64,000 bases of DNA from positions 62,001 to 126,000 of IMG/VR virus record IMGVR_UViG_3300031857_000010; one strand, given 5' to 3'. The number at the start of each line of letters is the position of its first letter. Positions within the stretch are counted from its first letter, which is position 1. Both the position numbers and the translations under genes were made by a program. Positions 5,437 through 50,969 of this stretch are shown here, one piece after another. The notes under the pieces are model-generated. The model searched no databases. It was not told the origin of the DNA and saw nothing but the letters and a program-made list of their open reading frames with translations.

Positions 5437-5442
5437 AATAAA

Positions 5443-5802: not shown

Positions 5803-5804
5803 TT

Positions 5805-6668: not shown

Positions 6669-6705
6669 TTTGTTTGTGATTTTACTATAGATAAAAGTAA
6701 TCTCA

Positions 6706-6736
6706 CAAATATAAGAAATATGAACTATAAAGACAA
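6706..6736 (-). promoter_or_regulatory. Bacteroidota-type promoter (TTG-N20-TATATTTG) upstream of sigma copy 1
   Basis: Minus-strand TTG at 6736-6734 and TATATTTG at 6713-6706. Confidence 0.5.
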
Positions 6737-6773
6737 CACTTTTCTAATTTTTTATAATTTTTTATAATTTTTA

Positions 6774-7631
6774 TTAAAAACGAAGTTCTGAACCCAAATT
6801 TCTTTTCATGAAACCTCTCAATTTTCTGATTGCTTTATCTTTAATTTGCCTGATCCTTTCCGAAGAAAATTCAAGTTTGTGTGCAATTTCAGTGTTTGTT
6901 AATTCCAGATTTTTATCATTTAATCCATAACTGAGTTTTATTACCTCCTTTTCCATTTCTGAAAGACAAGAAAAAGCTAATTCAATCTGTTTTTTTCTAT
7001 AATTACCTGCAACGTAATCTTCAATATTCAAAACATCTTGATTGAGTACATCTAATAAAGTGGTTTCGCAATCAGGTGTTAATTTTGTATCTAAAGAAGA
7101 AGTCTTGTTTCCGACGTATAAAATATCGAATGTTTTATGATCAATATTTAATTCTTTACAAACTTCATCTATAGAGAAATAACCATTATTCTCTAATTTC
7201 TTTTTATTTATTAAATCTTTTAAATGATTTTGTTGTTGGATTTTATTTTGAGGTAATCTAACTAATTGTCCATGTTTAGCAATTGCTTCTAGTATTGATT
7301 GTCTTACCCAAGCTACAGCATAAGAAATAAATTTGAAACCTCTAGTTTCATCAAATCTTTGAGCTGCTTTTATTAAACCAACATTTCCTTCTGCTATCAG
7401 TTCCTCTAATGACAAACCACGATTCTGATATTTTTTTGCACATGAAATAACAAATCTTAAATTGGCTTTTACCAATTCATTTTCTGCGTTTTTATCTCCG
7501 GTTCTAATTTTTTGAGCTAATTCAACTTCCTTTTGTTGATCAATCATCGGAATTAAAGAAACATCATTGAAATATTTATCAATTATAAAAGTTCTATCCG
7601 TGATGGTTGCTGTAATCTTTAGGCTTCTCAT
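6774..7631 (-). CDS. RNA polymerase sigma-70 family factor, copy 2
   Basis: ANLRFVISCAKKY, GLIKAAQRFDETRGFKFISYAVAWVRQSI, SERIRQIKDKAIRKLR. Confidence 0.95.
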   Translation of the reverse strand: MRSLKITATITDRTFIIDKYFNDVSLIPMIDQQKEVELAQKIRTGDKNAENELVKANLRFVISCAKKYQNRGLSLEELIAEGNVGLIKAAQRFDETRGFKFISYAVAWVRQSILEAIAKHGQLVRLPQNKIQQQNHLKDLINKKKLENNGYFSIDEVCKELNIDHKTFDILYVGNKTSSLDTKLTPDCETTLLDVLNQDVLNIEDYVAGNYRKKQIELAFSCLSEMEKEVIKLSYGLNDKNLELTNTEIAHKLEFSSERIRQIKDKAIRKLRGFMKRNLGSELRF

Positions 7632-12100: not shown

Positions 12101-12262
12101 TTGTTGTTTTTGCTGAATAAAATTAATATCAGAGGATTGTGTCGGAGGAGTACTGGATAATATATCCTTACTTTGTTCCAAAGACTTCATCGGGTCTTTT
12201 CGACCTCTTAAAGCCCTCATAACACCATAAAATACACTTTTTGGGTCTAATTCGTTTGCCAT
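9119..12262 (-). CDS. Portal protein (T4 gp20-like), intein-containing
   Basis: QLAEDAMLVYRLSRAPERRIFYIEVGN, EEDYFLP.RG, IETLPGA|SNL..IADIEYLQNKLFAAIKVP, and DLRFARTINRIQ. Confidence 0.93.
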   Translation of the reverse strand: MANELDPKSVFYGVMRALRGRKDPMKSLEQSKDILSSTPPTQSSDINFIQQKQQQYLDIQSVKIAQDLYSRTLFYDSDRITAYNDFRSMDLSPEIAAALDIISDEVCTRSERGHVITIYSDNLRIKKILQELFYNTLNAEFNLSFWTRELCKYGDCFLKLEIDQDQGIYDCMILPVGEIHKEVGYDGNPKSTRYKWDINNMFFEEWQVAHFCLLFDASRLPYGRSLLDPARKLWKQLQLAEDAMLVYRLSRAPERRIFYIEVGNTDPNDVYQLIEQVKKNVKKSPVVDPNSGQVNLKYNPITYEEDYFLPIRGDKSSKIETLPGACLALDTKIELLDGRSLELKDIISEFENGKQLWSYSINPETGEIVPGKITWAGLTRKNTDVVKITLDNGETITTTPDHKFPTKFNGIKQAKDLQIGESMWSFNKKFQKIKGAGKKRKRNTYEMVFDHNSNEWIYTHRLVANYFKNLNEHEIFSYLNEYFDSEKNTIHHKDFNRYNNSPENLCFMNPKDHFYYHQDKIDEMYKFFGNEITESWKKERKKGLVKYFENLSPEELDKKIKTAIDNSLKSRKKSASTFKSNPKKDEIIKRTSNKAKITKNKLENKIRYSQNSKKLWENKDYVESVIGPQRIKYDERMISILSDLIKNGFNKTQDILPIINDSNNEFYKIFNELNSNNKQFLKSKGITHNNLDKLVKHFGYKNWREFKNSAYCYNHKIVSVEFLSDKQDTGTITIDGPEQYHNFHNFALTVGIFTQNSNLDAIADIEYLQNKLFAAIKVPKTYLNYAESMPGGSTLSQVDLRFARTINRIQEQIVLELRRIANVHLYFLGFEDDLDNFTLTLTNPSTQLELLKLETWKARMEVFKELFSSDATAPVSYSWAMEYILGFSKSEIKQILRQKKVEKKMFSEIERANDEYMDTGIFKDLDEKFRKPDFDAGDGGSTPEGGSESSGGEESSGGFGGSSVLGGLGGGAEATPEATPELGGAEAAPEAGGTEPAAGGAEAEAGAPLTENKLIVENRKFDIQTRKMMKSIDSYLNKIKDENSDSE
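9995..11287 (-). mobile_element. Intein (431 aa) in portal, with HNH-type endonuclease
   Basis: Starts CLALDTKIELLDG; block B ITTTPDH; HNH segment THRLVA..IHHKDFNRYNNSPENL; ends HNFALTVGIFTQN followed by +1 Ser. Confidence 0.92.
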
Positions 12263-12321: not shown

Positions 12322-15063
12322 TTATCCAGACATCAACCAGCTCAAATCATTATCATCGTCTGATTTTCTGTTTTGACTCGTCAAAATAATACCCTCTGTT
12401 GGTTTGGAATCAAAATCTATTTTATCTCCGATTTCAGTTTTTTGGTTCGAAATCGCACCAATCATAGCTTTGTATAAATCTCTACTGGCAAAATGTTTGA
12501 AATATTCAGTATCTCTTACAAAAAGTAATACTCCCAAAGCAAAAATTAAATCATCATTAAATCCATCAGCATGTTCTGGTTTATTGCCATTATATATAAA
12601 AGTATCAAATTCCTCCAGTAATCTCACTGAATTTATCTTAATCTTTCCTTCTCTCATATAAGAATTTAAACTGCTTATAATTAAAGGTCTTGTTACCTGA
12701 GTTGTTTGAATACCGGGAATATCATCATTCTCTTTGATTTTAACTTTTGCTACCGGATTTATAATGTCTTTTATTGATTTTGAATGATAAATTCTGTCTT
12801 CTGGATATTTAAGACTATTTTTTATATTCAAAGTTGTTGCTAAACCAAAACTATTACATTCGATTACCAAATAAGCATTATTATAATCACGTCCAACTTT
12901 ATCAATTAAGCTTCCAAATACATCTGGTGGAATTTTACCTTGATACTCTGCTACTTGTTCACATGTATCAGCGTCAAAAACTTGTAATGTTGAAAAGTCT
13001 TTTGAATCGCCTCTTGCAACGTCTCCGCCCACAATGTAGTTTTTTCCATATTCTGGTTTTTTCCAAACCCAAAAATTTGTTTTTGTATTGATAAATCTTT
13101 CTTCAGACCTTGTATAATCATAATAAAATTCTGGTTTTTCGTTTATAATAGATCTTTTGTATTTTTCAATAATAGCACTTTCAATAACCAATTGTCTTGA
13201 ACCCTCAAATGACAAATCTAACTCTTGTGCGATTTTTACCCTATCATACTGTAATCGTTCACATTCTTTTTCATACCATGGACTTGTCCAATATTTTTGA
13301 CCATAATCATTAATTTTTTCCTCCATTTCTTTACAATAAACAGGATGTTGAGTCCAATGTATTTCAAATGGTATAAAATCATTTTCACTCTTTTTTGTTC
13401 CAACCCAAGTTCTATGATATAGGTTCCCCGTGCCTTGTGGAGTGCTTATCATGATACATTTACCTTGTGTTGCAGATAAAGCAAGACCAGCAGCCATCCA
13501 AATATCTTCTGCATTCTCTATAAACGCAGTCTCATCCAATATCAACATTGTTAATGATTCTCCACGACCTGCATTTTTGGAACTTGCAACTGCTTTTACC
13601 CATGATATTTTACCTTCTGGATTTTTCAATGAAAAGAATTTTTCATTGTCTTTTTCAGATTGTGTATCTGGATCAAATAAAAATTTAGGAAGAAATTGAA
13701 AATATTGTTTAACGGTACTTAAAAAACGAATTGCTCCAGCACCATCGTTTGCAACAATTAATATTCTTTGGTCCATTTTGAACAATAACATCCAAACTAC
13801 AAAGCCTGCTGTGATTACAGAAAGTCCTGTATTGTGAACTAAAAGACCATCAATAAAGTAGTTTTCATTTTTAGTTACTGAAATGTCATAACAATTAATT
13901 TTTCCAACTCTCTCTATTTTTCTAACTTTTGATTGATCTTTTACATCATGTTTTCTTGAATTTGAAATTGAAACGTGTTCTGAATTTATTTTTTTATAAA
14001 TTCCTATATCATTAATAAATTTTGATATGCTTTTGGAGTGAGTTATTCTTAATTTAAAAAAAGGATTTTTTTGAAGTTTCATATTTTTAACTTCATAAAT
14101 ATTACATTTAATATCAAATTTTTTTAATAAAAATTTTACTTGTTCTAAAAATTCCTTGCTTGGGGAAGCTATTCCTATTTCTAATCTTTTATTTGTTTTT
14201 TTCTTTAAAATACTTATCCAACCATCTCCTGCAAACATTCTATTTAATAAAATAGATAATGAATTCTTATTCCAATAAAAAACTTCTTGAGGTAATATTT
14301 TATTTTCTGTTTTCTTTCCAGCTATTTTTTTATTTTCACACCATTCCATGATTGGACTTTTGGTATTAACCCCATGCTTTTGATGAGGTAAATAATCGAA
14401 TCCTTTTAGTTTTGGTATTTTTCTTAAACTTAATTCTGGAAAAATATAATTTATTGATTCTTCAAATTCTTTTAGATAATCAATATTGTTGTTTGTAAAT
14501 TTTACTTGTTTGATTGTACTTCCATCCGTTATGAGATAAGCTAACAATTTTATTTCATTTATATCAGCTTCAATTTCCCCAAATTGAAATTTTTGATCTA
14601 AAATTTCATCGTCAATTTCTAAATCTTTTGCTGATACCCATTTGTTTTTATTTTTTATGAAAAAAGGGTGATTTTCACCAACAACAATATTTCTTGAATC
14701 TTTTAATTTTATTTTTACAGATTCTATTTCTCCGCATTCCCAATGATCATAAACCGTATCTAATTCATATTTATTTTTATTTAAATTGAATGAATATACT
14801 ATATCTCCTTTGTTTATTTCACTTATTTTTTTTGGCCCATCTGGTGTACTTATAAAAGTATCTTCTGGTAAACATTGTCTTGATTTTAGAATAATATTAT
14901 TCTGATATTTTATGTAATTTTTCAATACATTCTCTTGATACTCAAAACAAGATAATTTATCTACTTTGCTTTTTCTAATATCATAAACATATCCATAGTT
15001 ATTTAGAAAATAAACTGGATCTTTTGCACATTTAATATATTCTTGTATCTCTTGAGGTGTCAT
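12322..15063 (-). CDS. terL: Terminase large subunit, intein-containing
   Basis: KSRQ|TGLS Walker A region, LILDETAFI Walker B, ISTPQG, nuclease GGDVARGDSKDFS and DGFNDDLIFA; adjacent to the portal. Confidence 0.95.
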   Translation of the reverse strand: MTPQEIQEYIKCAKDPVYFLNNYGYVYDIRKSKVDKLSCFEYQENVLKNYIKYQNNIILKSRQCLPEDTFISTPDGPKKISEINKGDIVYSFNLNKNKYELDTVYDHWECGEIESVKIKLKDSRNIVVGENHPFFIKNKNKWVSAKDLEIDDEILDQKFQFGEIEADINEIKLLAYLITDGSTIKQVKFTNNNIDYLKEFEESINYIFPELSLRKIPKLKGFDYLPHQKHGVNTKSPIMEWCENKKIAGKKTENKILPQEVFYWNKNSLSILLNRMFAGDGWISILKKKTNKRLEIGIASPSKEFLEQVKFLLKKFDIKCNIYEVKNMKLQKNPFFKLRITHSKSISKFINDIGIYKKINSEHVSISNSRKHDVKDQSKVRKIERVGKINCYDISVTKNENYFIDGLLVHNTGLSVITAGFVVWMLLFKMDQRILIVANDGAGAIRFLSTVKQYFQFLPKFLFDPDTQSEKDNEKFFSLKNPEGKISWVKAVASSKNAGRGESLTMLILDETAFIENAEDIWMAAGLALSATQGKCIMISTPQGTGNLYHRTWVGTKKSENDFIPFEIHWTQHPVYCKEMEEKINDYGQKYWTSPWYEKECERLQYDRVKIAQELDLSFEGSRQLVIESAIIEKYKRSIINEKPEFYYDYTRSEERFINTKTNFWVWKKPEYGKNYIVGGDVARGDSKDFSTLQVFDADTCEQVAEYQGKIPPDVFGSLIDKVGRDYNNAYLVIECNSFGLATTLNIKNSLKYPEDRIYHSKSIKDIINPVAKVKIKENDDIPGIQTTQVTRPLIISSLNSYMREGKIKINSVRLLEEFDTFIYNGNKPEHADGFNDDLIFALGVLLFVRDTEYFKHFASRDLYKAMIGAISNQKTEIGDKIDFDSKPTEGIILTSQNRKSDDDNDLSWLMSG
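13831..14874 (-). mobile_element. Intein (348 aa) in TerL with LAGLIDADG endonuclease
   Basis: CLPEDTFISTPDG start; LLAYLITDGS and LLNRMFAGDGWI motifs; ends CYDISV..NENYFIDGLLVHN followed by +1 Thr. Confidence 0.95.
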
Positions 15064-35575: not shown

Positions 35576-36637
35576 ATGGTCTCTGGCGAAAATAATATTG
35601 TCATTAATTCTATTCTGAAAAGGATCCTTGGTGATCCAAAAGATGAATACGATAATATCATACAATTCGAATATAATTGTCCAAGTTCATATTGTAGAAG
35701 TGATATAGATAAATTTAATTTAGGCTACAATTCAGAATTAAATATTTTTCATTGCTGGAAGTGTAAATATAAGGGTTTTGTTAAGAGAGTTATAGAAGAT
35801 TTTGGAACAGAAGATGAGAATGAAAAAATAAAATTAATTTTTCCTAAATCCTCTAAAAATTATTTACAAAACAACAACAACATTACTAATAATAAAATTG
35901 TTGTAGACCAAAATTTAATCTGTGAACTTCCGGAGGGTTTTAAGCCACTTTCTCAAACTTATAGTAGTTTGAATTATAGAAAAGCAATAAAATATTTACA
36001 ATCTAGAAAAGTTGATTTTGAAACAATAAAAAAATACAATATAGGTTATACCGAAGACGGTCCAAGAAAATTTAGAATTATAATTCCATCTTATAATGTC
36101 GATGGTAAAATAAATTATTATGAAGCAAGGAGTTATTTACCTAATATAAAACCCACATATTTAAAACCTGATTTTCCTGATAAACAAGATATAATTTTTA
36201 ATGTTAAAAACATAAATTTTAATTTGCCAGTTTATCTTGTTGAAGGTGTATTTGATATGTTTCCAATATTGAATGCTATTCCTTTATTGGGTAAGACTAT
36301 TTCTGATCTTTTGCTGACCAAGCTTTTAGAATTTAAATCTAAAATTGTCATTTGTTTAGATGAAGACGCAAAAAAAGATGCATATAATCTATATTTTAAA
36401 TTAGAAAGTTTGGGTTTAGACGTTTATTATGTTGATATTAAAGGAGATATAGCAAAATATTATGAGCAAAATGGAAGAGAAGAATTGATTAAAATTCTAA
36501 GAAATCATAAAAAAATAGATTTTAATCATATTTTTGTTGATAAATTGAAAGGTAGAAAAAAAGGTTATTTAAAAAATATAAATCCTGATTTTGCAAAGAG
36601 GGAATTTGAGAGGTTAAAAAATAAAATAAATGAATAA
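35576..36637 (+). CDS. DNA primase (Zn finger plus Toprim)
   Basis: CPSSYC..HCWKC; LVEGVFD; CLDEDA. Confidence 0.85.
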   Translation: MVSGENNIVINSILKRILGDPKDEYDNIIQFEYNCPSSYCRSDIDKFNLGYNSELNIFHCWKCKYKGFVKRVIEDFGTEDENEKIKLIFPKSSKNYLQNNNNITNNKIVVDQNLICELPEGFKPLSQTYSSLNYRKAIKYLQSRKVDFETIKKYNIGYTEDGPRKFRIIIPSYNVDGKINYYEARSYLPNIKPTYLKPDFPDKQDIIFNVKNINFNLPVYLVEGVFDMFPILNAIPLLGKTISDLLLTKLLEFKSKIVICLDEDAKKDAYNLYFKLESLGLDVYYVDIKGDIAKYYEQNGREELIKILRNHKKIDFNHIFVDKLKGRKKGYLKNINPDFAKREFERLKNKINE

Positions 36638-39600
36638 TAAAATTGCACACATAGCTGATCTACATATTAGATTCGGTTCAAGACATCAAGAATATAAAAC
36701 TGTATTTAACAGACTTATAAAAGATTTAAAAAATGAACAACCAAGAAGAATAGTTGTTGCTGGAGATATTTTTCACCTGAAAATAAATATGTCTCCAACG
36801 TCTATTGATATTGCCGGTAATTTATTGAGGGCCTTATCCAAAATAGCACCAGTTGATTTGATTATTGGAAATCACGATTTTAATCAACAAGATTTAACTC
36901 AGGGCGATGCAATTTCTCCATTAATTGATTTATTAGAGAATGGTTTTATTGTCACAAAAGAAAATCCAGAATTGATAATTCCCAAGGATGGCAATGGTGT
37001 ATACTTTTTCAAGGATTCTGGTTTATATGAAATTGAAGAAGATATTATTTATGGTGTTTATTCTTTATTAGATAACGAGATATTAACTTTAACTGAAAAA
37101 GAAAAAAACAAAAAATATATAGCTCTTTACCACGGTCCTGTTTATGGATGCGTAAATGACAATGGATATCAACTGAAGGGTGATGAATTAATGAAAATTA
37201 CAGCCTTTAACAATTTTGACATTGTTATACTCGGTGATATACACGAACACCAATCATTTGAAAGAAAAAATGGAGATACTGCAGCTTATTCCGGCAGTTT
37301 AATTCAACAAAATTTCGGTGAGTCAATTGAAAAAGGATATTTGATTTGGGACTTAAATTCAAATGAATTTGAGAGAAAACATATCCCAAATGATTATGGG
37401 TATTGTAAGTTAAATATCACTAAAGGTGAAATTGTTGAAGAAAGATTACAGGATTTAAAGTTTTCTTTAGATAAGAAAAAAACTAGAGTTTATATCGAGA
37501 TTGAGGATGATGCTGAAAACGAAAATGTTGAAAAGAAGTCACAAGTAAGAAAATGGATTAAAGACATTCATGGCTGCGAAAATGTAACCGTTGAATTTAA
37601 ACCCATTATCAAGGATAAGGTTTTAGAATCAGATGAGGATGATTTTTCTTATGAAAATTCCGAAAGCTTTGAGAAGCTTTTGATTGATTATTTAAATCAA
37701 AATTCTTACGAAAATATTCAGGATGTTATTGAATTGAGCAAGGAAATTGATTCTAAAATAAATTTAGAATCGAATGATAAGAAGGGTATTGAATGGGATT
37801 TGAATAAAATGGAAACCTTTAATATTTTTTCTCATCCAGCACAAACAAATGAATTTGATTTTGACAAATTAAATGGAATCACCGGTATATTTGGAAAAAA
37901 CTACTCAGGAAAATCCAATTTAATAAAAGCTTTAGTGTGGGGATTATATGAAAAGATTTTGGGAGGAGGAGATAATCACAAGGTTGTTAATCTTTACACA
38001 GGTGTTAACAAGTCTTGGGTGAGAATTTACATTACAATAGCAGGTATTAAATATAGAATTGAAAGAGGTATAACTGTTTCATCCAAAAGAGATGGAACAA
38101 CCAAAGCTGCATATTCTGTCAAATATGAATATTTATCTCACGATGAAGATGGTGAAGAAATTTGGATCAATGAAGATTCTGATCGTGCTGCTAAAGAGAA
38201 AAAAGAGTTTAAAAAACTAATAATTGATAGTATAGGAACTTTCGATGATTTTACAAAAATATCACTTCAGACACAAGGTGGAAAAGATGATTATTTAAGT
38301 TTACAACAACAACCAAAGAATGATTTGATAAGAAAGTTTTTTGGTTTGGAGGTTTTTGACATCAAATATGAATTCGCTAATAAAATTTTTAATCAAATAA
38401 AGTCTGTACAAAAACAACTTGGAGACCCATCTGAAATCGAAAAACAGATTGAAGAATTGAAGGATAAAAATTCTAATGATAAAATACATCTTGACTCTCT
38501 ACAAAAGGATAAAGATGAAAATGATGAACAGATAGAAATTCACAATTCTGAAATTTTAGAACTCACAAAAAAAATATTGCAATTAGAAGAAACTACTGAA
38601 AAAAATATAACTGAAGTAGAACAAAAAATAGAGAAAAATAATTCAGAAATTAATAAATTTTCTGAAAATATAAATTCATTATCTGATTGGACATCTAAAA
38701 ACTTTCTTAAGGAAACACCTCAAGAAATTGCTGGATTAAAATCAAATGACCTAGAAAATAAAATAGAGTCTATAAAAACACGATTCCAAAAAAATAAAAA
38801 TTTATATCTTGAATTTGAGAAATGGATTAAGGAAAATCCTAAACTTACTGTTGAGGAATCAAAACCATATGAAGATGAATTAGATTCTAAACGAAAAGAT
38901 AAATTAAATTTAGATAATGATCTAAAGGTTTCTAGAGGAGAAAAGTGCCCAACTTGTAAACAAACCACTAAACAAGCTAATCCAGAAGTTGAGCAAGAAT
39001 GTATTGTGAAGATTTCTTCAATCACATCAGAAATAAACGGATTACAAGAAAAAATAAATTCGATAAAAAGTGCTTCTACTCATAATATAAATTTTGATGG
39101 TCAAAAAAATAAGTTAGACTCTCTTAAAATATCATTACAATCTGATAAAAATGAAATGGATTCATTGAAAGTCAATTTAGAAAAATTGAAACAAGCCGAA
39201 ACTGACATCTTGCATAATGAGGAGGTAAAAAATAAAAACAGAGATTTGGAGGATCAAAAAAATAAATTGAAGAGTTTTGAAGATAAAAATAAAGACCTCA
39301 AAGAACAAATTTCTAAAATAAAATCAAACGAAACCAAGATATCATCTAATAGTAAAATTGATAACAAAATTGAAGCTTTAAAACAAAGTATAAAAGAATA
39401 CAAGATTGTTATTCATCAACTTGATAATAAAATAAAAGATTTTTCCGGTACAATAAAAGTTAATCAAAACAATATCGAAAACTTGATTGATAAATTAAAT
39501 CAGATAAAAGAATCAGTTAGAATATATGCTAAATATTCTGTTTATTTACAGGCTGTTTCAAGAGATGGAATACCAGCTCAGATAATTAAAAAGAAACTTC

Positions 39601-40061
39601 CAATTGTTAATTATAGAATCAACTCAATTCTATCAAATATTGTTAACTTCAGAATTGATATGTTCATTAAAAACAATGGAGATGTTCAAGAAATATTTTA
39701 TTTCAGTCCAGACAAAATAGATTCGCTTCCTTTATCTATGGGTTCTGGATCTCAGAAATTTGTTGGTAGTATAGCAATTACCGATGCATTACACTCTGTA
39801 AGCTGTTTGATGAAACCAAGTCTAAGGATTATAGATGAAGGTTTTGGTACGCTTGATGAAGATAAGACAGCAGACATTGGAAAGGTCTTTTCTTATTTAA
39901 GTAACAGATATAAAAATATTCTTATAATAACTCATAGAACAGAAATAAAAGATTTTGTAAATAACATTATACAAGTTACCAAATCTAATTCCGGGTTGAT
40001 TAAAGAACAGGTTGAGGCCAATCCTGATGCAGGAATTTCACAGTTTTCTATAACTTCATAA
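36630..40061 (+). CDS. Fused SbcD/Mre11 nuclease and SbcC/Rad50 ATPase (gp47-gp46-like)
   Basis: HIADLH, GDIFH, GNHD, GDIHEHQ; then GKNYSGKS, CPTC zinc hook, SMGSGSQ, IIDEGFGTLD, ILIITH, all in one ORF. Confidence 0.92.
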   Translation: MNNKIAHIADLHIRFGSRHQEYKTVFNRLIKDLKNEQPRRIVVAGDIFHLKINMSPTSIDIAGNLLRALSKIAPVDLIIGNHDFNQQDLTQGDAISPLIDLLENGFIVTKENPELIIPKDGNGVYFFKDSGLYEIEEDIIYGVYSLLDNEILTLTEKEKNKKYIALYHGPVYGCVNDNGYQLKGDELMKITAFNNFDIVILGDIHEHQSFERKNGDTAAYSGSLIQQNFGESIEKGYLIWDLNSNEFERKHIPNDYGYCKLNITKGEIVEERLQDLKFSLDKKKTRVYIEIEDDAENENVEKKSQVRKWIKDIHGCENVTVEFKPIIKDKVLESDEDDFSYENSESFEKLLIDYLNQNSYENIQDVIELSKEIDSKINLESNDKKGIEWDLNKMETFNIFSHPAQTNEFDFDKLNGITGIFGKNYSGKSNLIKALVWGLYEKILGGGDNHKVVNLYTGVNKSWVRIYITIAGIKYRIERGITVSSKRDGTTKAAYSVKYEYLSHDEDGEEIWINEDSDRAAKEKKEFKKLIIDSIGTFDDFTKISLQTQGGKDDYLSLQQQPKNDLIRKFFGLEVFDIKYEFANKIFNQIKSVQKQLGDPSEIEKQIEELKDKNSNDKIHLDSLQKDKDENDEQIEIHNSEILELTKKILQLEETTEKNITEVEQKIEKNNSEINKFSENINSLSDWTSKNFLKETPQEIAGLKSNDLENKIESIKTRFQKNKNLYLEFEKWIKENPKLTVEESKPYEDELDSKRKDKLNLDNDLKVSRGEKCPTCKQTTKQANPEVEQECIVKISSITSEINGLQEKINSIKSASTHNINFDGQKNKLDSLKISLQSDKNEMDSLKVNLEKLKQAETDILHNEEVKNKNRDLEDQKNKLKSFEDKNKDLKEQISKIKSNETKISSNSKIDNKIEALKQSIKEYKIVIHQLDNKIKDFSGTIKVNQNNIENLIDKLNQIKESVRIYAKYSVYLQAVSRDGIPAQIIKKKLPIVNYRINSILSNIVNFRIDMFIKNNGDVQEIFYFSPDKIDSLPLSMGSGSQKFVGSIAITDALHSVSCLMKPSLRIIDEGFGTLDEDKTADIGKVFSYLSNRYKNILIITHRTEIKDFVNNIIQVTKSNSGLIKEQVEANPDAGISQFSITS

Positions 40062-43702: not shown

Positions 43703-44125
43703 ATGGAAAAAACTAAAGAGATTTTAATCAAATTATATTTGAATTTTTCAGAAAATGAATTTTCGAATTTTGGTGATGATTTATTTAATCAATCAGATTT
43801 AAGATCCGCTATTTGTGAAGTTCTGGATAATCAGGAAATTTTTATTATTGATTTAGCTGTTTACATAAATCAAATAAAGAAGAAAATTGATTATGAAGAG
43901 GATGATAAAGCGTATATGAAAAAATTACGTTCACTATGGGATAGTTTTTCTGTAAATGATTTATATGATTTAAAAGATAAGTGTGATAATAATTCCATAA
44001 AAAATATCATACAAAAAATGATAATTCTTAAAAATGCTTTCAAAAAATTTAATCAAGAAGTTGTAGATATAGATTATGAAGATTACTTTTATGAACAAAA
44101 TAAATTAATCAATTTAATTCTATGA
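43703..44125 (+). CDS. Hypothetical protein
   Basis: 140-aa ORF. Confidence 0.65.
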   Translation: MEKTKEILIKLYLNFSENEFSNFGDDLFNQSDLRSAICEVLDNQEIFIIDLAVYINQIKKKIDYEEDDKAYMKKLRSLWDSFSVNDLYDLKDKCDNNSIKNIIQKMIILKNAFKKFNQEVVDIDYEDYFYEQNKLINLIL

Positions 44126-44418
44126 ACGAAAAAACTTATCCGAAAATTTATAGAGATAAGCTAAATAGAATTAATTACATACTACAAAACGAGTTTCAAA
44201 AAATTATCTATACATTTTATGGAGAAACAAAAAACATAAAAATTAAATATGTTTATTTCAGGAAAAATGTATATTTTGATGCTTTCTCAAAATCTGGACA
44301 CTTGATATTTTCTACATTCGAAGATAATTACAGTTCCACAGTTGAAAAAAAATATGATGGAACAATAAGTTTTATCATTCATCCAGAAAAAATTAAAATC
44401 ATAAACCAAATAAAATAA
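44122..44418 (+). CDS. Hypothetical protein
   Basis: 98-aa ORF, ATGA-coupled to the previous gene. Confidence 0.6.
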   Translation: MNEKTYPKIYRDKLNRINYILQNEFQKIIYTFYGETKNIKIKYVYFRKNVYFDAFSKSGHLIFSTFEDNYSSTVEKKYDGTISFIIHPEKIKIINQIK

Positions 44419-44419
44419 T

Positions 44420-44845
44420 ATGTTAATCAAAATTAAAAAATTAGACCCCAACGCAATTATTCCAAGTTATGCTAAAATGGGTGATGCAGGAATGGATTTG
44501 ACTGCATTATCTTTAACTGTAGATCCCAATGGATTCTATACTGAGTATGGAACTGGATTAGCGATTGAAATTCCTGATGGTTATGCTGGATTTATTTTTC
44601 CTCGAAGCTCTGCAAGTAAAACTTCTCAAATTCAAGCTAATTGTGTTGGTGTAATAGATTCGGGTTATCGTGGTGAGATTAAAGTAAGATTGAAAGAACT
44701 TGGTAATCCTCGGAAATTATATCAAATAGGTGATAGAATTGCTCAAATAATTATTATGCCTGTTCCAAATGTAATTTTTGAAGAGGTTGATGAATTGAAT
44801 ACTACTGATAGAGGAGAAGGTGGTTTTGGTAGCACAGGCAACTAA
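44420..44845 (+). CDS. dut: dUTPase (trimeric)
   Basis: AGMDL, PRSS, GVIDSGYRGEI, RIAQII, RGEGGFGSTG. Confidence 0.97.
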   Translation: MLIKIKKLDPNAIIPSYAKMGDAGMDLTALSLTVDPNGFYTEYGTGLAIEIPDGYAGFIFPRSSASKTSQIQANCVGVIDSGYRGEIKVRLKELGNPRKLYQIGDRIAQIIIMPVPNVIFEEVDELNTTDRGEGGFGSTGN

Positions 44846-44889
44846 ACTACAAATTTCAAAATATTAATTTAAATTTAAAAATAAAAAAT

Positions 44890-46230
44890 ATGGCTATAGA
44901 AGATTTGGATGACTCTAAATTATTATTTCCTTCTGATGGGAATAACAATAAAAAAAATAGATCAAACACTCCGCTGTTAGATAATTTTGGAAAAGATATT
45001 ACAAAATTAGCTGCTTCTGGAAAAATTGAACCTGCAGTAGGAAGAGAAAATGAAGTAGATAGAATTATTCAAATTTTAAGTAGAAAGAAAAAGAATAATC
45101 CTGTATTAGTTGGTCAACCCGGTGTAGGTAAAACTGCGATTGTAGAATCTCTTGCAAATAAAATAGTTGATAAAAAGGTTAGTGTTGTTCTTCATGATAA
45201 AAGAATAGTAAGCTTAGATATTTCACTCATAGTTGCCGGAACAAAATACAGAGGTCAGTTTGAGGAAAGGATGAAAGCAATTATGGATGAAATTGAAAAT
45301 AATCCTAACATTATTTTATTTATTGATGAATTACACACCATAATTGGTGCTGGTAATTCTGCTGGATCTTTAGATGTTTCTAATATTATAAAACCTGCTC
45401 TTGCAAGAGGTACAATGCAAATTATAGGTGCTACAACAATTGAAGAATATAAAAAATCGATTGAAAAAGATGGGGCTATGGAAAGAAGGTTTCAAAAAGT
45501 AATGATTGAGGAACCCTCTATTGAAGAAACTAAAACTATTCTTAATAACATTAAAGGAATTTATGAGGATTTTCATAATGTTACTTTTGATGCCGAAGCA
45601 ATAACATCTGCAGTAGATTATTCTGTTAGATATATTACCAATAGATTTTTACCAGATAAAGCGATCGATATTATTGATGAAGCAGGTGCTAGATTACATT
45701 TGGATAATCTCCACTTACCAGTAGAATTAGAAGTTCTTGAAAATAAATTGAATGATCTTAAGAACGAAAAAAACGAAGTAATAAAATCTCAAAAATATGA
45801 GCAAGCTGCTAAGATCAGAGACAAGGAGAGAGATTTAATAAAAGAAATAGAGATTTTTAAATACAACTGGCAAAATCAACAAAAAACCAAAAGGGTTCCT
45901 GTCACAGAACATGATATTGCGAGAGTCGTTTCAAAAATGATTGGAATTCCGGTAACTCAAATCACAGAAAGTGAAGGTGTTCGTCTAATGAAAATGGGTG
46001 AAGAGTTGAAAAAAAGGGTTATTGGACAGGATGAAGCAATTGAAAAAATATCCGAATCTATTCAGCGATCAAGATCTGGATTGAGTAATCCAAAAAAACC
46101 TATTGCAAGTTTTTTGTTTCTTGGTTCAACTGGTATTGGTAAGTGTTTAGGAAAAAATACAGAAATAACAATAATGGCTGATGATATTTTAATAAATAAA
46201 ATATTAGAAAACAGAAAAAACAAAAATTAA
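44890..46230 (+). CDS. clpC: ClpC-type AAA+ ATPase, N-half (NBD1, UVR M-domain, start of NBD2), fused to a split-intein N-part
   Basis: GRENEV, NNPVLVGQPGVGKT, LFIDELH, RFLPDKAIDIIDEA, KYEQAAKIRD; ends FLFLGSTGIGK-CLGKNTEI. Confidence 0.93.
   Translation: MAIEDLDDSKLLFPSDGNNNKKNRSNTPLLDNFGKDITKLAASGKIEPAVGRENEVDRIIQILSRKKKNNPVLVGQPGVGKTAIVESLANKIVDKKVSVVLHDKRIVSLDISLIVAGTKYRGQFEERMKAIMDEIENNPNIILFIDELHTIIGAGNSAGSLDVSNIIKPALARGTMQIIGATTIEEYKKSIEKDGAMERRFQKVMIEEPSIEETKTILNNIKGIYEDFHNVTFDAEAITSAVDYSVRYITNRFLPDKAIDIIDEAGARLHLDNLHLPVELEVLENKLNDLKNEKNEVIKSQKYEQAAKIRDKERDLIKEIEIFKYNWQNQQKTKRVPVTEHDIARVVSKMIGIPVTQITESEGVRLMKMGEELKKRVIGQDEAIEKISESIQRSRSGLSNPKKPIASFLFLGSTGIGKCLGKNTEITIMADDILINKILENRKNKN
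46144..46227 (+). mobile_element. Split intein N-fragment (28 aa)
   Basis: CLGKNTEITIM block A begins directly after the Walker A GK and is followed by a stop codon. Confidence 0.85.
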
Positions 46231-46235
46231 CACTA

Positions 46236-46282
46236 TTTAGGTTTAACAGGGATAGGAAAATTAGTATCCCTGTATTCCTAAA
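46236..46282 (+). promoter_or_regulatory. RNA hairpin covering the endonuclease translation start region
   Basis: ACAGGGATA/TATCCCTGT 9-bp stem, plus an outer TTTAGG/CCTAAA pairing that reaches the A of the ATG. Confidence 0.5.
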
Positions 46283-47379
46283 TGATAATTAAAAGTAGAA
46301 AAAAAGTATTGTTCAATATCGAATCAATAGAAGAGTTTGAAAAATATTTAAGTAAAGAGATTAAGAATTTCAAAAATTTAAATAATTTAGAAAAAGGACA
46401 AAGAGAAAATCTTATAGTTGCTCTTTCAGAAAAAAATGAAATAGGTATAAAAAAATTCAGAAATATATTTGTAAAAAATTATATTAATTGTAAAACACTT
46501 TTTAATAAAAAATATTGGTTAGAAAGGGGTTATTCTCACGAAGAGGCAGTTAGTGAAATTTTTAAAATTCAAAAAATTAACAACATAAAAGCGGTTGAAG
46601 TAATGCAAGATTTAAAAAAATATGATCTTAATAATTACAAAAAAAAAAGAAATATCTATGTTGAGTATTGGATAGAAAAAGGATTCACTATTGAAGAAGC
46701 AAAAATAAAATTAAAAGAAAGACAATCAACTTTTTCACTTGAAAAACTTAAATTAAAATATGGCGAGAAAGAAGGTTTAATCAAATTCAATCAACGTAAT
46801 GATAAGTGGCAAAATAGTCTTTATAGTAAAATGACTTTTGAACAAAAAAATGAATTTGAAAAAAGCAAGTGTATAACCAAAGATAAAATGGTTTCTAAGT
46901 ACGGTGAAAAATTGGCTACAGAAAAATGGGAAAATTATATTAAGACTCACTCAAATATGTGGAATGCGTCTGGTATATCAAAAAAATACATTGATGAAAT
47001 TCTATCTATTATTGGACCTGATGAAATTGAAACTGAAACCATATTTTACGGTTCAGATATAAAAAGTGAATTTTACCTATATGACAAAGAAACGATGTCT
47101 TTGTATTGGTATGATCTCACTTTTTTTGATAGAAAAAAAATAATAGAATTTGACGGTATTCACGTACATCCGGATCCAAATGCTCTTGAAAATGAACGTT
47201 TAAATTGGAAACAAGCGTACACAAATAAAAGTTATGAAGAAGCTTTGTCAAAAGATATAGCTAAAGAACAATTTGCAATAAAAAATGGTTTTGAAGTACT
47301 TAGAATTAGATTACCAAAACATTCAACAAATACAATAAAAGAGTCTATTGATAAATGCATAAAATTTATAAAAAAATAA
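46282..47379 (+). CDS. Free-standing Vsr-like/PD-(D/E)XK homing endonuclease
   Basis: C-terminal YDL....KIIEFDGIHVH...K...A.KNGFEVLRI; N-terminal YW.E.G..EEA and KYGE repeats. Confidence 0.7.
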   Translation: MIIKSRKKVLFNIESIEEFEKYLSKEIKNFKNLNNLEKGQRENLIVALSEKNEIGIKKFRNIFVKNYINCKTLFNKKYWLERGYSHEEAVSEIFKIQKINNIKAVEVMQDLKKYDLNNYKKKRNIYVEYWIEKGFTIEEAKIKLKERQSTFSLEKLKLKYGEKEGLIKFNQRNDKWQNSLYSKMTFEQKNEFEKSKCITKDKMVSKYGEKLATEKWENYIKTHSNMWNASGISKKYIDEILSIIGPDEIETETIFYGSDIKSEFYLYDKETMSLYWYDLTFFDRKKIIEFDGIHVHPDPNALENERLNWKQAYTNKSYEEALSKDIAKEQFAIKNGFEVLRIRLPKHSTNTIKESIDKCIKFIKK

Positions 47380-47383
47380 TAAA

Positions 47384-47800
47384 ATGATTGAATTAAAAGT
47401 AAAAATAGAAGAGATATTCGAAGCAGTTTCTCAATTAGAAGCTCAAGAATTTATTCCAGAAAAAGAGATTTTTCAAAAATCTAAAATAATGGTCAAAAAC
47501 GAATTTGGTAAATGGATAAATGTTTTAGGTATGATCACAAAAAAAGATCAAGTTCGTGAAATTAAATTTTCTGATGGAAGCTTCTGTGTAGTTGCAGATA
47601 ATCACAAAATACGTAAAGAAAAGAATGAATGTTGTTTAGTTTCTAATTTGTTGATCGGAGATTTTGTTGAAAAGGCAGATGAAAGTAAAATTTCTGTAAT
47701 TAGCAACAATTTAACAGGTGAAATTGAAACTGTTTTTGATATGCACGTTGATTCTGAAACTCATTTATATCAAACAGAAAATGGAATTGTACATCACAAC
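47384..47800 (+). mobile_element. Split intein C-fragment (139 aa)
   Basis: Block B VADNH, block F TVFDMHV, block G GIVHHN, +1 Thr. Confidence 0.88.
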
Positions 47801-48643
47801 ACAGAATTATCTAAAGCACTATCTGAATATTTATTTAATGATGAAGATTCGCTAATTAGAATTGACATGAGTGAATATATGGAACCACATAGTGTATCAA
47901 AATTAATAGGTGCTCCTCCGGGATATGTTGGTCATGGTGATGGCGGTCAATTGACTGAAAAAGTTAGAAATAAACCTTATAGTATTGTTTTATTTGATGA
48001 AATAGAAAAGGGTCATAAAGATGTGATAAATATTTTATTACAGCTTTTGGATGAAGGAAAATTGACTGATGGAGACGGTGTTGAAATTAATTTTAAAAAT
48101 ACTGTGGTTATTATGACATCAAATATTGGAACGCAAGAAATTACTGAAAACAAACCAGTAGGATTCAATTCAGATCTTTTGAAAAATAATCTTGAAAACC
48201 AAAGGATAATTGAAAAGGCATTAAAAAAACATTTCAGACCGGAGTTGCTTAATAGAATTGATGATGTTGTTATATTCCAAAAATTGACCCAAGATAATGT
48301 ATTAGATATCGTAAAAATTCATTTAAGAAACTTTGAAAAAAATGTTATTTCTCAAGGAATAAATGTTGAATTTACAGATAAAATGATTGATTTTATTGGT
48401 GAAGAAGGTTATTCTGACGAATATGGAGCAAGGCCTATTCTTAGAGTTATAACAAAATTTGTTGAAACTCCTTTGTCTAAAGAATTACTTCTCAAAAAAA
48501 TTATAAAAGGTGATGATATTATCATTGATTTTGACAAAGAAAAAGGAACTTTAATTTCTAAAAGAGAAGAAAAAAAAGAAACCAAAGTTAAAAATGTTGT
48601 CAAAAAAAAGGTTACGAGAAAAAAGAAAGAGGATAATATTTAA
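47384..48643 (+). CDS. clpC: Split-intein C-part fused to ClpC C-half (rest of NBD2)
   Basis: HHN|TELSKAL, RIDMSEYMEPHSVSKLIGAPPGYVG, LFDEIEK, IMTSNIG, VGF loop, FRPELLNRID, YGARP. Confidence 0.93.
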   Translation: MIELKVKIEEIFEAVSQLEAQEFIPEKEIFQKSKIMVKNEFGKWINVLGMITKKDQVREIKFSDGSFCVVADNHKIRKEKNECCLVSNLLIGDFVEKADESKISVISNNLTGEIETVFDMHVDSETHLYQTENGIVHHNTELSKALSEYLFNDEDSLIRIDMSEYMEPHSVSKLIGAPPGYVGHGDGGQLTEKVRNKPYSIVLFDEIEKGHKDVINILLQLLDEGKLTDGDGVEINFKNTVVIMTSNIGTQEITENKPVGFNSDLLKNNLENQRIIEKALKKHFRPELLNRIDDVVIFQKLTQDNVLDIVKIHLRNFEKNVISQGINVEFTDKMIDFIGEEGYSDEYGARPILRVITKFVETPLSKELLLKKIIKGDDIIIDFDKEKGTLISKREEKKETKVKNVVKKKVTRKKKEDNI

Positions 48644-48683
48644 TATTTTATTTCTCGGTTCATTCTATTATTTTTATTAAATA

Positions 48684-49802
48684 ATGAATGATGATTTTTA
48701 CACATTATTGGGTTTAACTAAGGATGCCAGTCAGGATGATATAAAAAAAGCTTATAGATCTTTAAGTAAAAAATATCATCCTGATTTAAACCCTAACAAT
48801 AAAGAAGCCGAAGAAAAATTTAAAAAAATTAACGAGGCTTATTCTGTTTTAAGCGAACCAGAAAAAAGAAAACAATACGATAATAGAGGTTCTGGTTTTG
48901 GGAATTTTTCAAATTTCAACCAAGGTTTTTCAAACTTCGATTTTTTCTCTGATTTCTTTAATTTTAGAAATAATAATCAGAGACCTCAACAACAAAACCA
49001 AAAAGGTTCTGACTTAAGAATCAAATTGTCTTTTTCTTTAGAGGAAGTTGTACATGGTTCTAGAAAAACAATTAAATATAATAGAAATGTTTGTTGTTCA
49101 TCTTGCAAAGGAAATGGTTCTAAAGAAGGTATTTCTTTGAAAACATGTAATAATTGTAACGGACAAGGAAGTGTTATTAATGTTGTACAAACTCCTTTTG
49201 GTAGAATTCAAACTTCGAACCATTGCAATATTTGTAATGGTGCAGGAAAAATAATAAATGAAATTTGTAATAGTTGTGGAGCTAGAGGAATAAAAGAAAA
49301 CTTTGAAAATATTGAAATAAACGTACCTCCCGGAATTACTGAAGGATTTGTTTATAAGATCGAGAATGGTGGAAACTTTAATAATTCTCCTAACTCAATT
49401 CCCGGTGATTTGATAATACTTTGCACAATATCAGAACACATTATTTATAAAAAATTCAATAATGATATTCATAGAGATGTATTTATAAATTTTATTGATG
49501 CTATAACGGGAACTGATAATTTTATTATAAATGTTTTTGGTGAGGACATAAGAATTAAGATTGATCCAAATACTGACAATGGTAAAATATTAAGACTAAA
49601 AGGAAAAGGATTGCCCAATAACGGAAGTTATGGAGATTTATACGTTCATATAAATGTTTTTGTTCCAAAAAATTTAGATGTGAATACCTTAAATGTACTT
49701 TCACAAATAAAAGAAAAAATAGAACCTACCATTGAAAATATTAATCCAGAAATTGGCTTTTTAAACAAATCATTGAAAATCAATTCACTGTATAATAATT
49801 AA
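48684..49802 (+). CDS. dnaJ: DnaJ chaperone (class A)
   Basis: J-domain HPD, G/F-rich region, four CxxC(x)GxG-type repeats, GDLYV. Confidence 0.95.
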   Translation: MNDDFYTLLGLTKDASQDDIKKAYRSLSKKYHPDLNPNNKEAEEKFKKINEAYSVLSEPEKRKQYDNRGSGFGNFSNFNQGFSNFDFFSDFFNFRNNNQRPQQQNQKGSDLRIKLSFSLEEVVHGSRKTIKYNRNVCCSSCKGNGSKEGISLKTCNNCNGQGSVINVVQTPFGRIQTSNHCNICNGAGKIINEICNSCGARGIKENFENIEINVPPGITEGFVYKIENGGNFNNSPNSIPGDLIILCTISEHIIYKKFNNDIHRDVFINFIDAITGTDNFIINVFGEDIRIKIDPNTDNGKILRLKGKGLPNNGSYGDLYVHINVFVPKNLDVNTLNVLSQIKEKIEPTIENINPEIGFLNKSLKINSLYNN

Positions 49803-49842: not shown

Positions 49843-50166
49843 ATGGAAAAAATAAACAAAATTTTAGGTAAGTATGGAATAATCATGCTTCTTGTGTTCA
49901 GTATTTTGACATTCTTTAACACTTGTGGAACAAAAAGTTCAATAAAGCAAACAAATAAAAGAATTGATGAATTAGAGAAAAGAGATTCTTTGAATATGGA
50001 AATTCTCTCAATTGAAAGAGAAATAAGTATTTTGAAAACATCAAGAGAAATTGTCTATACTAATAATGCAATTGTTAGAACAACAGCTAGGCCGGATGAT
50101 GTAATGAATGACTATTCTAGAAAAATAGATGAGTTACAGAAAAAATTAGATAAGTTGAAGAAATGA
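49843..50166 (+). CDS. Membrane-anchored coiled-coil protein (possible lipoprotein)
   Basis: N-terminal hydrophobic helix ending NTCG, then coiled coil. Confidence 0.6.
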   Translation: MEKINKILGKYGIIMLLVFSILTFFNTCGTKSSIKQTNKRIDELEKRDSLNMEILSIEREISILKTSREIVYTNNAIVRTTARPDDVMNDYSRKIDELQKKLDKLKK

Positions 50167-50969
50167 TAATTTACAAAACTACAAATCTTTTAAATGGTAA
50201 GATATATATAGGTAAGGATAAGAAAAATAATAAAAATTATTTGGGTAGTGGAGTTGCCTTAAAAGAGAGTATAAAAAAATACGGAAAAAATAATTTTAAA
50301 AAAGAAATTATTTGTTTTTGTAATAATTTAGAAGAGTTGAATGAAAAAGAAAAATATTATATTAAATTTTACAATTCTCAAGATAAAAATATTGGATATA
50401 ATATAACTGAAGGGGGCGATGGTAATAGTTTGAGTTGGAATGGTCCAAAATTGACTGATTCTCATAAACAAAATATATCAGATGGTTTAAAAAAATCAGA
50501 TAAATTTAAGAAAATGTGGGAAGGCGATGAACACAAGAAAAAATTAAAGGAATCTAGGGCAAAATCAGAAAAAGTTAAGAAAATTATAGAATCTCAAGAT
50601 TGGAAAAATAAAATTAGTGAATCAGTGAAAAATTCAGAAAAATTTAAGGAGGCTATTAAAAACCCAGAAAGATCTCAAAAAATTAGTAAATCAATGTTGG
50701 AATCAGAAATTTTAAAAAAATCTAGATCGTCTAATGAATTTAAGGAAAAATGTAGTGTATGGCAAAAAGGCAAGAAAAGATCACCGGAATTTTTAAAAAA
50801 ATTTAATGAATCAAGAGCTAAAACATTCGAAGCAAAAAATAAAGAAAAAAAAGATAATTTGTTAAAAATATTACAAGAAAATGATTTTGATATTTTAGAT
50901 ACTTCAAAAAAACTAAATATAACAACCTTTTCTGTATATAGATTAATTAAAAAATTTAATTTAAGATGA
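50163..50969 (+). CDS. Free-standing GIY-YIG (Seg-like) homing endonuclease
   Basis: MIIYKTTNLLNGKIYIGK, YLGSG, EKYYI, GYNITEGGDG, and basic NUMOD-like repeats. Confidence 0.88.
   Translation: MIIYKTTNLLNGKIYIGKDKKNNKNYLGSGVALKESIKKYGKNNFKKEIICFCNNLEELNEKEKYYIKFYNSQDKNIGYNITEGGDGNSLSWNGPKLTDSHKQNISDGLKKSDKFKKMWEGDEHKKKLKESRAKSEKVKKIIESQDWKNKISESVKNSEKFKEAIKNPERSQKISKSMLESEILKKSRSSNEFKEKCSVWQKGKKRSPEFLKKFNESRAKTFEAKNKEKKDNLLKILQENDFDILDTSKKLNITTFSVYRLIKKFNLR

Follow-up and report, generated by a model that had tools for sequence, protein, structure and literature searches.

Natural inteins of phages offer several precedents for the locus described here. Dassa et al. (2009, PMC2677866) described fractured phage genes, in which an N-extein joined to the N-terminal part of an intein (IntN), an open reading frame (ORF) for an endonuclease of a Vsr-like type, and the C-terminal intein part (IntC) joined to its C-extein follow one another on one strand; 15 of their 16 loci have a hairpin ahead of the endonuclease, which the authors connect with repression of translation, as in the case of the Aeh1 nrdA endonuclease. 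Atypical splits are also known (PMC10189870, PMC13014065), and are classed as S1 if the break separates strand beta2 from helix alpha1 (VidaL, PolB16), or as S2 if it comes after alpha1 (AceL-TerL, GOS-TerL) (PMC13014065). Finally, inteins cluster in ATP-binding sites, where insertion into the P-loop is well known (Novikova et al. 2016, PMC4760082). Here we describe a fractured clpC gene in a 64,000-nucleotide stretch of phage DNA (positions 62,001 to 126,000 of IMG/VR record IMGVR_UViG_3300031857_000010; referred to below as the window), in which the Walker A motif of the second nucleotide-binding domain (NBD2) is interrupted by an intein whose two parts are encoded by separate genes. The best explanation, and one that we consider likely from the sequences and structural models, is that protein trans-splicing restores the Walker A motif and so would activate NBD2.

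The interrupted clpC gene

The locus consists of three genes on one strand, with the following parts:

44890-46230, + strand: ORF1 as a whole, 446 residues
44890-46143, + strand: ClpC N-extein, 418 residues (ORF1 residues 1-418), ending FLFLGSTGIGK (from the translation, Pfam and phrog_4871)
46144-46230, + strand: IntN, ORF1 residues 419-446 (46144-46227), CLGKNTEITIMADDILINKILENRKNKN, then TAA at 46228-46230
46234-46284, + strand: RNA hairpin in the 5' leader of the endonuclease gene (from folding against shuffled sequences)
46282-47379, + strand: ORF2, a free-standing homing-endonuclease-like gene, 365 residues
47384-48643, + strand: ORF3 as a whole, 419 residues
47384-47800, + strand: IntC, ORF3 residues 1-139, ending GIVHHN (from an AlphaFold2 model, Foldseek and a family profile)
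47801-48643, + strand: ClpC C-extein, 280 residues and a stop, reading TELSKALSEYLF from ORF3 residue 140 (the TELSKAL start)

Joining the two exteins (418 + 280) gives a ClpC of 698 residues. ORF1 residues 18-418 match positions 163-509 of phrog_4871, a PHROG profile of phage Clp ATPases (E 3.6e-136), and ORF3 residues 140-397 match positions 510-761 (E 4.6e-97); because the profile runs 509|510 across the junction without a gap, the interruption is exact. An earlier sequence-only reading of the window had placed the break of a two-ring ClpC-type AAA+ protein precisely inside the NBD2 Walker A motif (GIGK|T), which the profile bears out, and its ORF coordinates, the lengths of IntN and IntC, the HHN end of IntC, the TELSKAL start of the C-extein and the 698-residue product were correct to the base. 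The layout that it had proposed, with a free-standing endonuclease gene between the two halves, matches that of Dassa et al. (2009, PMC2677866), including the hairpin just before the endonuclease start and an endonuclease stop that adjoins the downstream start, here across a gap of 4 nt. The observation of a fractured clpC is far beyond chance, and the feature is real.

The window is phage DNA, encoding a T4-like portal, a large terminase, SSB, a UvrD-like helicase, a topoisomerase and a dUTPase, the last of these directly upstream of ORF1. A megablast search of GenBank phages with 24 kb of the window gave no match, and distant blastn matches are to ClpC-like genes only, in pieces of at most about 1.5 kb, for example in uncultured phages of 630-640 kb. 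Since the window is metagenomic, and a related short contig (L087, see below) looks chimeric, one might suspect a chimeric contig or spurious stops in an otherwise contiguous intein gene. However, the window is matched at 100% identity by four IMG/VR contigs that come from different samples; the identity extends over 13,257 nt in three of them and over 7,973 nt in the fourth, which excludes misassembly. At least six divergent loci moreover have the same three-gene layout, and we give an artefact of assembly or sequencing practically no credence. One of the four contigs is 216.7 kb long, which puts the phage at roughly 217 kb.

It is also very improbable that the interruption is removed or bypassed at the level of nucleic acid, either as a group I or group II intron with an endonuclease ORF or by readthrough or frameshifting to yield a contiguous intein precursor. 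Vsr-like endonucleases do occur inside group I introns as well (Dassa 2009, PMC2677866), and ORF1 and ORF2 share one frame, but two in-frame TAA codons (46228 and 46279) lie between them, and ORF3 is in another frame behind TAATAA. The flanks encode complete and correctly ordered intein blocks, for which an intron would have no need, and a search of positions 44000-49500 against Rfam at permissive E-value filters finds nothing. An RNA intron and misassembly were the two alternatives that the sequence-only reading had itself raised, and neither gains support from the Rfam search or from the four identical independent contigs.

The N-extein contains NBD1 and a short M-domain that includes a UVR motif, and breaks off within NBD2 at the Walker A sequence GSTGIGK, with Pfam matches in ORF1 to AAA (72-201), AAA_lid_9 (210-312, E 1e-31) and UVR (284-315). 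The C-extein begins at the +1 Thr of Walker A and continues through the rest of NBD2 to a D2-small domain, ORF3 matching AAA_2 at 139-294 (E 5e-57) and ClpB_D2-small at 301-380. The ATPase motifs are all intact in both halves, with GQPGVGKT, DELH and a KYRG pore loop in NBD1 and the Walker B sequence DEIEK and pore loop GYVG in NBD2. A VGF tripeptide (KPVGFNS) in the C-extein stands at the position of the PhiGF loop, a motif defined for docking to ClpP (PMC12521514). ORF1 starts about 50 residues ahead of NBD1, and because it has no Pfam match to Clp_N we call the protein N-domain-less; a Clp_N domain is apparently present, judged by eye, in the relatives L005, L008, L009 and L078. By its sequence motifs the joined protein is predicted to be an N-domain-less, ClpC-like, ClpP-coupled unfoldase rather than a ClpB.

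The intein, its split site and the gene that divides it

A search of 1.84 billion representative proteins with the 139-residue IntC gave a family of at least 128 clusters at 50% identity. About 12 members are contiguous, and in these GK is followed by C-[LV]-x-x-x-[TS]-x-[IV]-x-[IV] and then by a short helix-like linker ahead of an IntC-like segment. The 28 codons of IntN in the window (CLGKNTEITIM followed by ADDILINKILENRKNKN) start with Cys1, encoded by TGT at 46144 directly after GIGK, and continue with the block A strands, a conserved amphipathic helix and a basic tail. The sequence CLGKNTEITI fits the pattern, and the contiguous member P0077 reads CLGKETKIRIMVLNDIAKLIQSL... where the window reads CLGKNTEITIMADDILINKILEN...; because the contiguous members supply the same pattern, the last 28 residues of ORF1 are the genuine N-terminal part of this intein family. 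The same architecture of IntN recurs in L081 (CLEGSTLLNLKVDEELAKKIQEIQNRKK), in L082, in the RecA of L083 and in the contiguous P0077.

IntC opens with strand beta3 and helix alpha1, followed by blocks B (H74), F (D119, H127) and G (H138, N139). In an alignment of 105 family sequences these residues are conserved at 100% (H74), 84% (D119), 87% (H127), 99% (H138) and 100% (N139), with T140 at 79%, and the window IntC has every strongly conserved residue of the family, including F12 and K53, and scores E 2e-51 against the family profile. Cys1, H74, D119, H127, H138, N139 and Thr+1 are thus all present. The best match of the single IntC sequence in the PDB is CatC (E 0.022), and a profile built from 71 family members matches the solved inteins gp41-1 (1.5e-8), Pho RadA (4.6e-6), VidaL (5.2e-6), PolB16 (9e-6) and CatC (1.5e-5). 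An AlphaFold2 model of IntC made from the family alignment has a mean predicted local distance difference test score (pLDDT) of 97.4 and a predicted template modelling score of 0.87; in a Foldseek search of the PDB its top 50 matches are all inteins or intein-like HINT/BIL domains (probability 1.00), and VidaL superposes on it with template modelling scores of 0.76/0.73 and a root-mean-square deviation of 2.3 Å over 140 columns. Removal of the intein restores the host sequence: in 65 intact homologues the corresponding point is occupied by GxGK|T. On residues, modelled fold and insertion site together we assign the flanking pieces to a class 1 intein.

The model also locates the break. A 7-residue coil at the start of IntC is followed by a helix at residues 8-19, which corresponds to alpha1 of the HINT fold. 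The break thus falls between beta2 and alpha1, which makes it, in the model, an atypical split of the S1 type. In the contiguous members C-L-x-x-x-T-x-I-x-I and the linker helix precede an 'I-x-I-x-x-L-F' segment, and a helix is found in them too at the position of the 17 residues by which IntN extends beyond its two strands. The two closest relatives, L081 (...VDEELAKKIQEIQNRKK) and L082 (...VSDELFDEIMRNRKK), have the same amphipathic helix and basic tail at that position, and it is because these conserved elements follow the strands that IntN reaches 28 residues. Its net charge is +1 (as is that of the tail), and that of IntC is -8 overall and -5 in the first 30 residues, so that the slightly basic tail may help to steer IntN electrostatically onto the acidic IntC. 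The sequence-only reading had called the split atypical, with a 28-residue, Cys-led N-part and a 139-residue C-part carrying blocks B, F and G and a +1 Thr, and in this it was right.

Between the halves, GC content falls to 0.20 over the 5' half of ORF2 as against about 0.30 in clpC. The N-terminal part of the ORF2 product consists of helical repeats of the form YWIE(K/R)G(Y/F)..EEA, and the C-terminal part has the pattern D...IIEFDGxxxH...D...G(F/Y)xVL, with D278, E289, H296 and D326. Homologues occupy the same position in L005, L007, L008, L009, L081 and L082, and in five of the homologues D278, K286-I-I-E289, G292, H296 and G336-x-x-V-L-x-I are invariant. Sequence searches with ORF2 gave no Pfam match, and no PDB match by phmmer or profile search; it matches phrog_22677, a family of unknown function (2e-6), its relatives in L007 and L008 have weak DUF559/MTES_1575 matches, and tblastn against phages returned hypothetical proteins only. 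A structural model has a pLDDT of 57 overall and of 67-90 in the C-terminal blocks, and its best PDB matches in Foldseek are the Vsr-like cleavage domain of AbaSI (E 0.03, probability 0.99) and E. coli Vsr (1vsr, E 0.22). An hhalign comparison with E. coli Vsr places D278/E289/H296/D326 on D51/F62/H69/D97, at a weak score (E 0.013, probability 3%); an invariant Glu at the position of Vsr Phe62 is what Dassa et al. (2009, PMC2677866) reported for Vsr-like homing endonucleases. ORF2 is probably a Vsr-like homing endonuclease of the EDxHD type, and because the alignment score is weak we put it no more firmly than that. The sequence-only reading was therefore right in placing a free-standing gene between the halves, while its Vsr-like label finds only the weak backing of the Foldseek match (E 0.03) and the hhalign score.

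The hairpin ahead of ORF2 (46234-46284) has a folding energy of -21 kcal/mol (z score -5.06; 0 of 200 shuffled sequences were as good). Its outer stem pairs UAUUUAGG with CCUAAAUG, and the ORF2 AUG (46282-46284) lies inside the stem. Among relatives, hairpins precede the endonuclease in L081 (z -5.7), L082 (z -9.4) and L005 (z -5.5), and a significant one is present in four of the five loci tested, L007 being the exception (z -1.9). The TATAAATA late-promoter box reported by Dassa (2009) is, judged by eye, not convincingly present in the hairpin.

Relatives of the locus and the case for trans-splicing

We surveyed 81 IMG/VR and assembly loci that encode a ClpC homologue, reading the Walker A motif in frame from the tblastn match. 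GxGK|T is uninterrupted in 65 of them, 15 have an intein that ends exactly there, and one (L061) has an in-frame stop. This stop, near position 6001, lies a few codons before the Walker A Thr and shows no intein signature, and the homologue may be a frameshift or a pseudogene.

Three intein lineages are seen at this site. The first, ending ...HHN, is S1-split and comprises the window's phage (in its four contigs), L081 and L082. The second, ending ...ILSHN, is S2-split with a Vsr-like endonuclease in L005/L010, L007, L008 and L009 (with an IntN of 31-35 residues in L005, L007, L008 and L009), is contiguous in L078 as a 173-residue mini-intein in a 1019-residue ORF (4003-7059), and has an IntC half standing alone in L006. 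The third, ending ...TVTHN, is a contiguous LAGLIDADG intein in a 1182-residue ORF (L041/L043, 3310-6855). The order of N-half, endonuclease and C-half is kept in L081, L082, L005, L007, L008 and L009; in L081 the genes run dUTPase, ClpC-N, endonuclease, ClpC-C, clpP, and its IntC is about 46% identical to that of the window. Identities of the divergent loci are 45-57% for the exteins and 35-46% for IntC, and as both halves remain open with all motifs this points to function and not to decay. In L008 (1837-7065) a second split intein, very similar to that in NBD2, interrupts the NBD1 Walker A without an endonuclease and with a 48-nt gap. ClpC is thus encoded there in three pieces and, if the reading of the sequence is correct, would need two splicing events to become one protein, in which the two intein pairs would have to avoid mis-pairing. 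Intact and contiguous-intein clpC alleles, which the sequence-only reading had suggested looking for, and independently split ones all exist among relatives. The phage ClpC site hosts every stage of a proposed intein life cycle, being found without an intein, with a mini-intein or a LAGLIDADG intein, and with S2-split, S1-split and endonuclease-free split inteins.

Two further contigs deserve mention. In L006 (1355-2638) the IntC and ClpC C-half are preceded by unrelated small genes and not by an N-half and endonuclease; possible reasons are that the N-half is encoded elsewhere in the genome, unlinked to the C-half, or that it falls outside the 8.8-kb contig. L087 (1-1241, protein P0021) has 83% nucleotide identity to window positions 47659-48486, and since its first 258 nt are unrelated its IntC lacks the first ~92 residues; it may be a chimeric assembly or a decayed allele.

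Beyond ClpC, in about 108 of the family's clusters the protein opens with the homologous segment, which begins no later than residue 25, and nearly all segments end in ...NG-x-(I/V)-H-H-N, followed by T or S (rarely C) and the sequence usual after a Walker A lysine. A Pfam scan of 96 members found C-exteins with Clp-type AAA_2 in 22 (16 with D2-small), RecA in 8, SF2 helicase domains in 8, PhoH in 2 and DnaB in 2, with a terminase, an ABC transporter, a ClpX zinc finger and others once each. An S1-type intein of this lineage also splits the Walker A (SAGK|T) of a RecA in L083 (2298-4817; also in L084), where IntN has 33 residues (CLTYETYTNLMVEDDFYQYLKSRG...) and the intervening ORF, of 289 residues, has NUMOD3, unlike the Vsr-like type. 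These other P-loop hosts, the fractured RecA included, indicate that the lineage targets the GK|T/S bond generally and is typically S1-split. We propose, as a tentative view that may well need revision, that the window intein belongs to a large S1-split family, apparently undescribed in the searchable literature, whose IntN joins two strands to an amphipathic helix and basic tail, and which is specialised for GK|T/S and apparently hops between unrelated ATPases (ClpC/ClpA/ClpX, RecA, SF2 helicases, PhoH, DnaB, terminase, ABC) in the company of different free-standing endonucleases. In one protein, P0002 (residues 130-310), IntN, its tail and a Met-starting IntC (…NGKNN-MKKIKIKIGDLF) stand in a single ORF, which looks, from its sequence, as if a split intein had been re-fused after loss of the endonuclease.

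Taken together, the conserved residues and the fold suggest that the fractured clpC is probably a functional trans-splicing system, and a plausible sequence of events can be outlined. A free-standing homing-endonuclease gene would have divided an intein in the NBD2 Walker A (GIGK|T), the cut falling in the loop after beta2. The three genes would be read from the one strand, with the hairpin that buries the AUG of the endonuclease holding its level low, and two polypeptides would be made, ClpC(1-418)-IntN(28 residues) and IntC(139 residues)-ClpC(280 residues). IntN, with its two strands, amphipathic helix and basic tail, would dock into the near-complete, acidic IntC to finish the HINT fold, and class 1 splicing could then proceed through a thioester at Cys1, transfer to Thr+1, cyclisation of Asn139 and an O-to-N shift. 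The predicted product is the 698-residue ClpC with a restored GSTGIGKT P-loop, which would form hexamers and feed a ClpP peptidase by way of the VGF loop, and in co-infections the endonuclease would allow the element to invade alleles that lack an endonuclease or an intein. Two further suggestions of the sequence-only reading, that splicing could gate the unfoldase and that the unspliced N-half might be a modulator, are speculative.

An alternative is that the intein pieces no longer splice, and are either a non-covalent docking pair only, as in the mobE-split NrdA of phage Aeh1, or a decaying remnant in a phage left without ClpC. Non-splicing assembly of an endonuclease-fractured gene is documented (PMC3045599); the Thr usual in block B is replaced by Ala (ADNH) in this family, the window included; and the truncated IntC of L087 could be a case of decay, although that contig is only 1.2 kb long and may be chimeric. 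However, the seven residues from Cys1 to Thr+1 listed above are kept here and across more than 100 family clusters, and a mere docking module is therefore unlikely, as docking would not need them. In addition, a Walker A motif interrupted between GK and T has to be re-ligated before it can bind ATP normally, and in relatives at 45-57% identity both halves and all ATPase motifs are intact. We regard loss of splicing as unlikely.

The block B Ala weighs against trans-splicing as well, and it does not stand alone. Splicing, in this intein and in the whole family, is something that we infer from sequences and models. An intein-free or endonuclease-free allele was not found in a close relative, the nearest intact ClpC being about 50% identical. 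The family assignment of the endonuclease is weak, combining a partial fold match with a motif alignment at low scores. Lastly, there is no clpP among the ORFs scanned in the 64-kb window, although the relative L081 has one right after clpC. With these points in the balance, trans-splicing is still the explanation that we favour.

The gene that adjoins clpC downstream in the window (48684-49802, + strand) is a full DnaJ homologue with a J domain, a zinc-finger region and a C-terminal domain, so that the phage carries a small chaperone cluster; in L081 the gene in this position is clpP. Two genes downstream of clpC is a free-standing gene for a GIY-YIG (SegE-like) homing endonuclease (50163-50969, + strand; phrog_314 at 4e-32). 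The large terminase subunit (12322-15063, - strand; phrog_36964, phrog_2) contains an intein with a LAGLIDADG endonuclease domain at about residues 77-410, and the T4-like portal (9119-12262, - strand; Portal_T4, phrog_213) contains one at about residues 341-743 with an HNH-endonuclease-like insert. Inteins of portal proteins are less commonly discussed than those of terminases. The two inteins, the fractured clpC and the GIY-YIG gene amount to four mobile elements in 64 kb; no further copy of the clpC intein or of its endonuclease was found in the window, where the portal intein alone gave a partial match. Elsewhere, a single ORF of 1143 residues (36630-40061, + strand) has both Metallophos (SbcD/Mre11-like) nuclease and AAA_23 (SbcC/Rad50-like) domains, and seems, from its domain content, to unite two genes that are normally separate.

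Comparison with known systems

The likeness to the fractured genes of Dassa et al. (2009) in layout does not extend to the host or to the site of the break. Their hosts are gp41, IMPDH, DnaE, NrdA, NrdJ, ligase and terminase, whereas here the host is a ClpC unfoldase, and fractured genes are thereby extended from enzymes of DNA metabolism and packaging to a motor of protein quality control. Their loci break at the usual site of the endonuclease domain and the window intein near its N-terminus; the terminase locus alone among theirs is atypical, and it breaks later, after alpha1, than the window does. The EDxHD endonucleases such as I-Bth0305I (PMC3239194) may share the C-terminal residue pattern of ORF2, a possible likeness drawn by way of the Vsr alignment and not with I-Bth0305I itself, but ORF2 differs in lacking a significant Pfam or PDB sequence match and in having a long N-terminal repeat region.

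Insertion between GK and T/S of Walker A is shared with the P-loop inteins of DnaB, MCM, RFC, RecA and RadA (PMC4760082). Most P-loop inteins are contiguous, however, and the window intein is split; Clp/Hsp100 proteins are not among the top 15 hosts listed in the Novikova 2016 survey. A literature search for the phrases ClpB, ClpC, ClpX, ClpA, Hsp100 and Clp intein found no paper, although supplementary listings of this intein family may exist. The sequence-only reading had placed the known split examples mostly in replication, nucleotide or terminase genes and knew of none in a Clp chaperone. In sequence databases, however, Clp inteins are common: they are present in 15 of the 81 phage ClpC loci and make up 22 of the 96 scanned family members.

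The natural short-IntN inteins characterised so far are few (AceL-TerL, GOS-TerL, VidaL and PolB16). They are described as rare in reviews and are in demand for the semisynthesis and labelling of proteins. To these the locus and its relatives add numerous natural IntN/IntC pairs from another lineage, which have Cys1/Thr+1 and a defined extein context of -1 Lys/+1 Thr. The natural series at one site, from empty through contiguous, S2-split and S1-split to three-piece, is well suited to testing how homing endonucleases break inteins, and also to asking whether the timing of splicing matters for a phage-encoded Clp protease.

Among the short-IntN inteins, AceL-TerL, GOS-TerL and Cat (PDB 6DSL) are likewise natural split inteins of phages, but in them helix alpha1 belongs to IntN, whereas in the window it belongs to IntC, and both the host and the insertion site are different; their S2-type split is the one found in L005, L007, L008 and L009 at the same ClpC site. 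VidaL (16-residue IntN, PDB 6VGV) and PolB16 OarG (15-residue IntN, PDB 8CPN) are closer, as they are split after beta2 and before alpha1 and have a near-complete HINT IntC (PMC10189870, PMC13014065). They are nonetheless distant in sequence, with profile matches of 5e-6 and 9e-6 at partial coverage and 16-22% identity in fold alignments, their IntN is much shorter than the 28 residues found here, and PolB16 has Ser1/Ser+1 in place of Cys1/Thr+1. On sequence and model, then, we take the window intein to work like VidaL and PolB16 but to be of a separate lineage, and what appears to be new in print is the Clp host, an S1-split lineage with a helical extension of IntN, and the series of states at one site.

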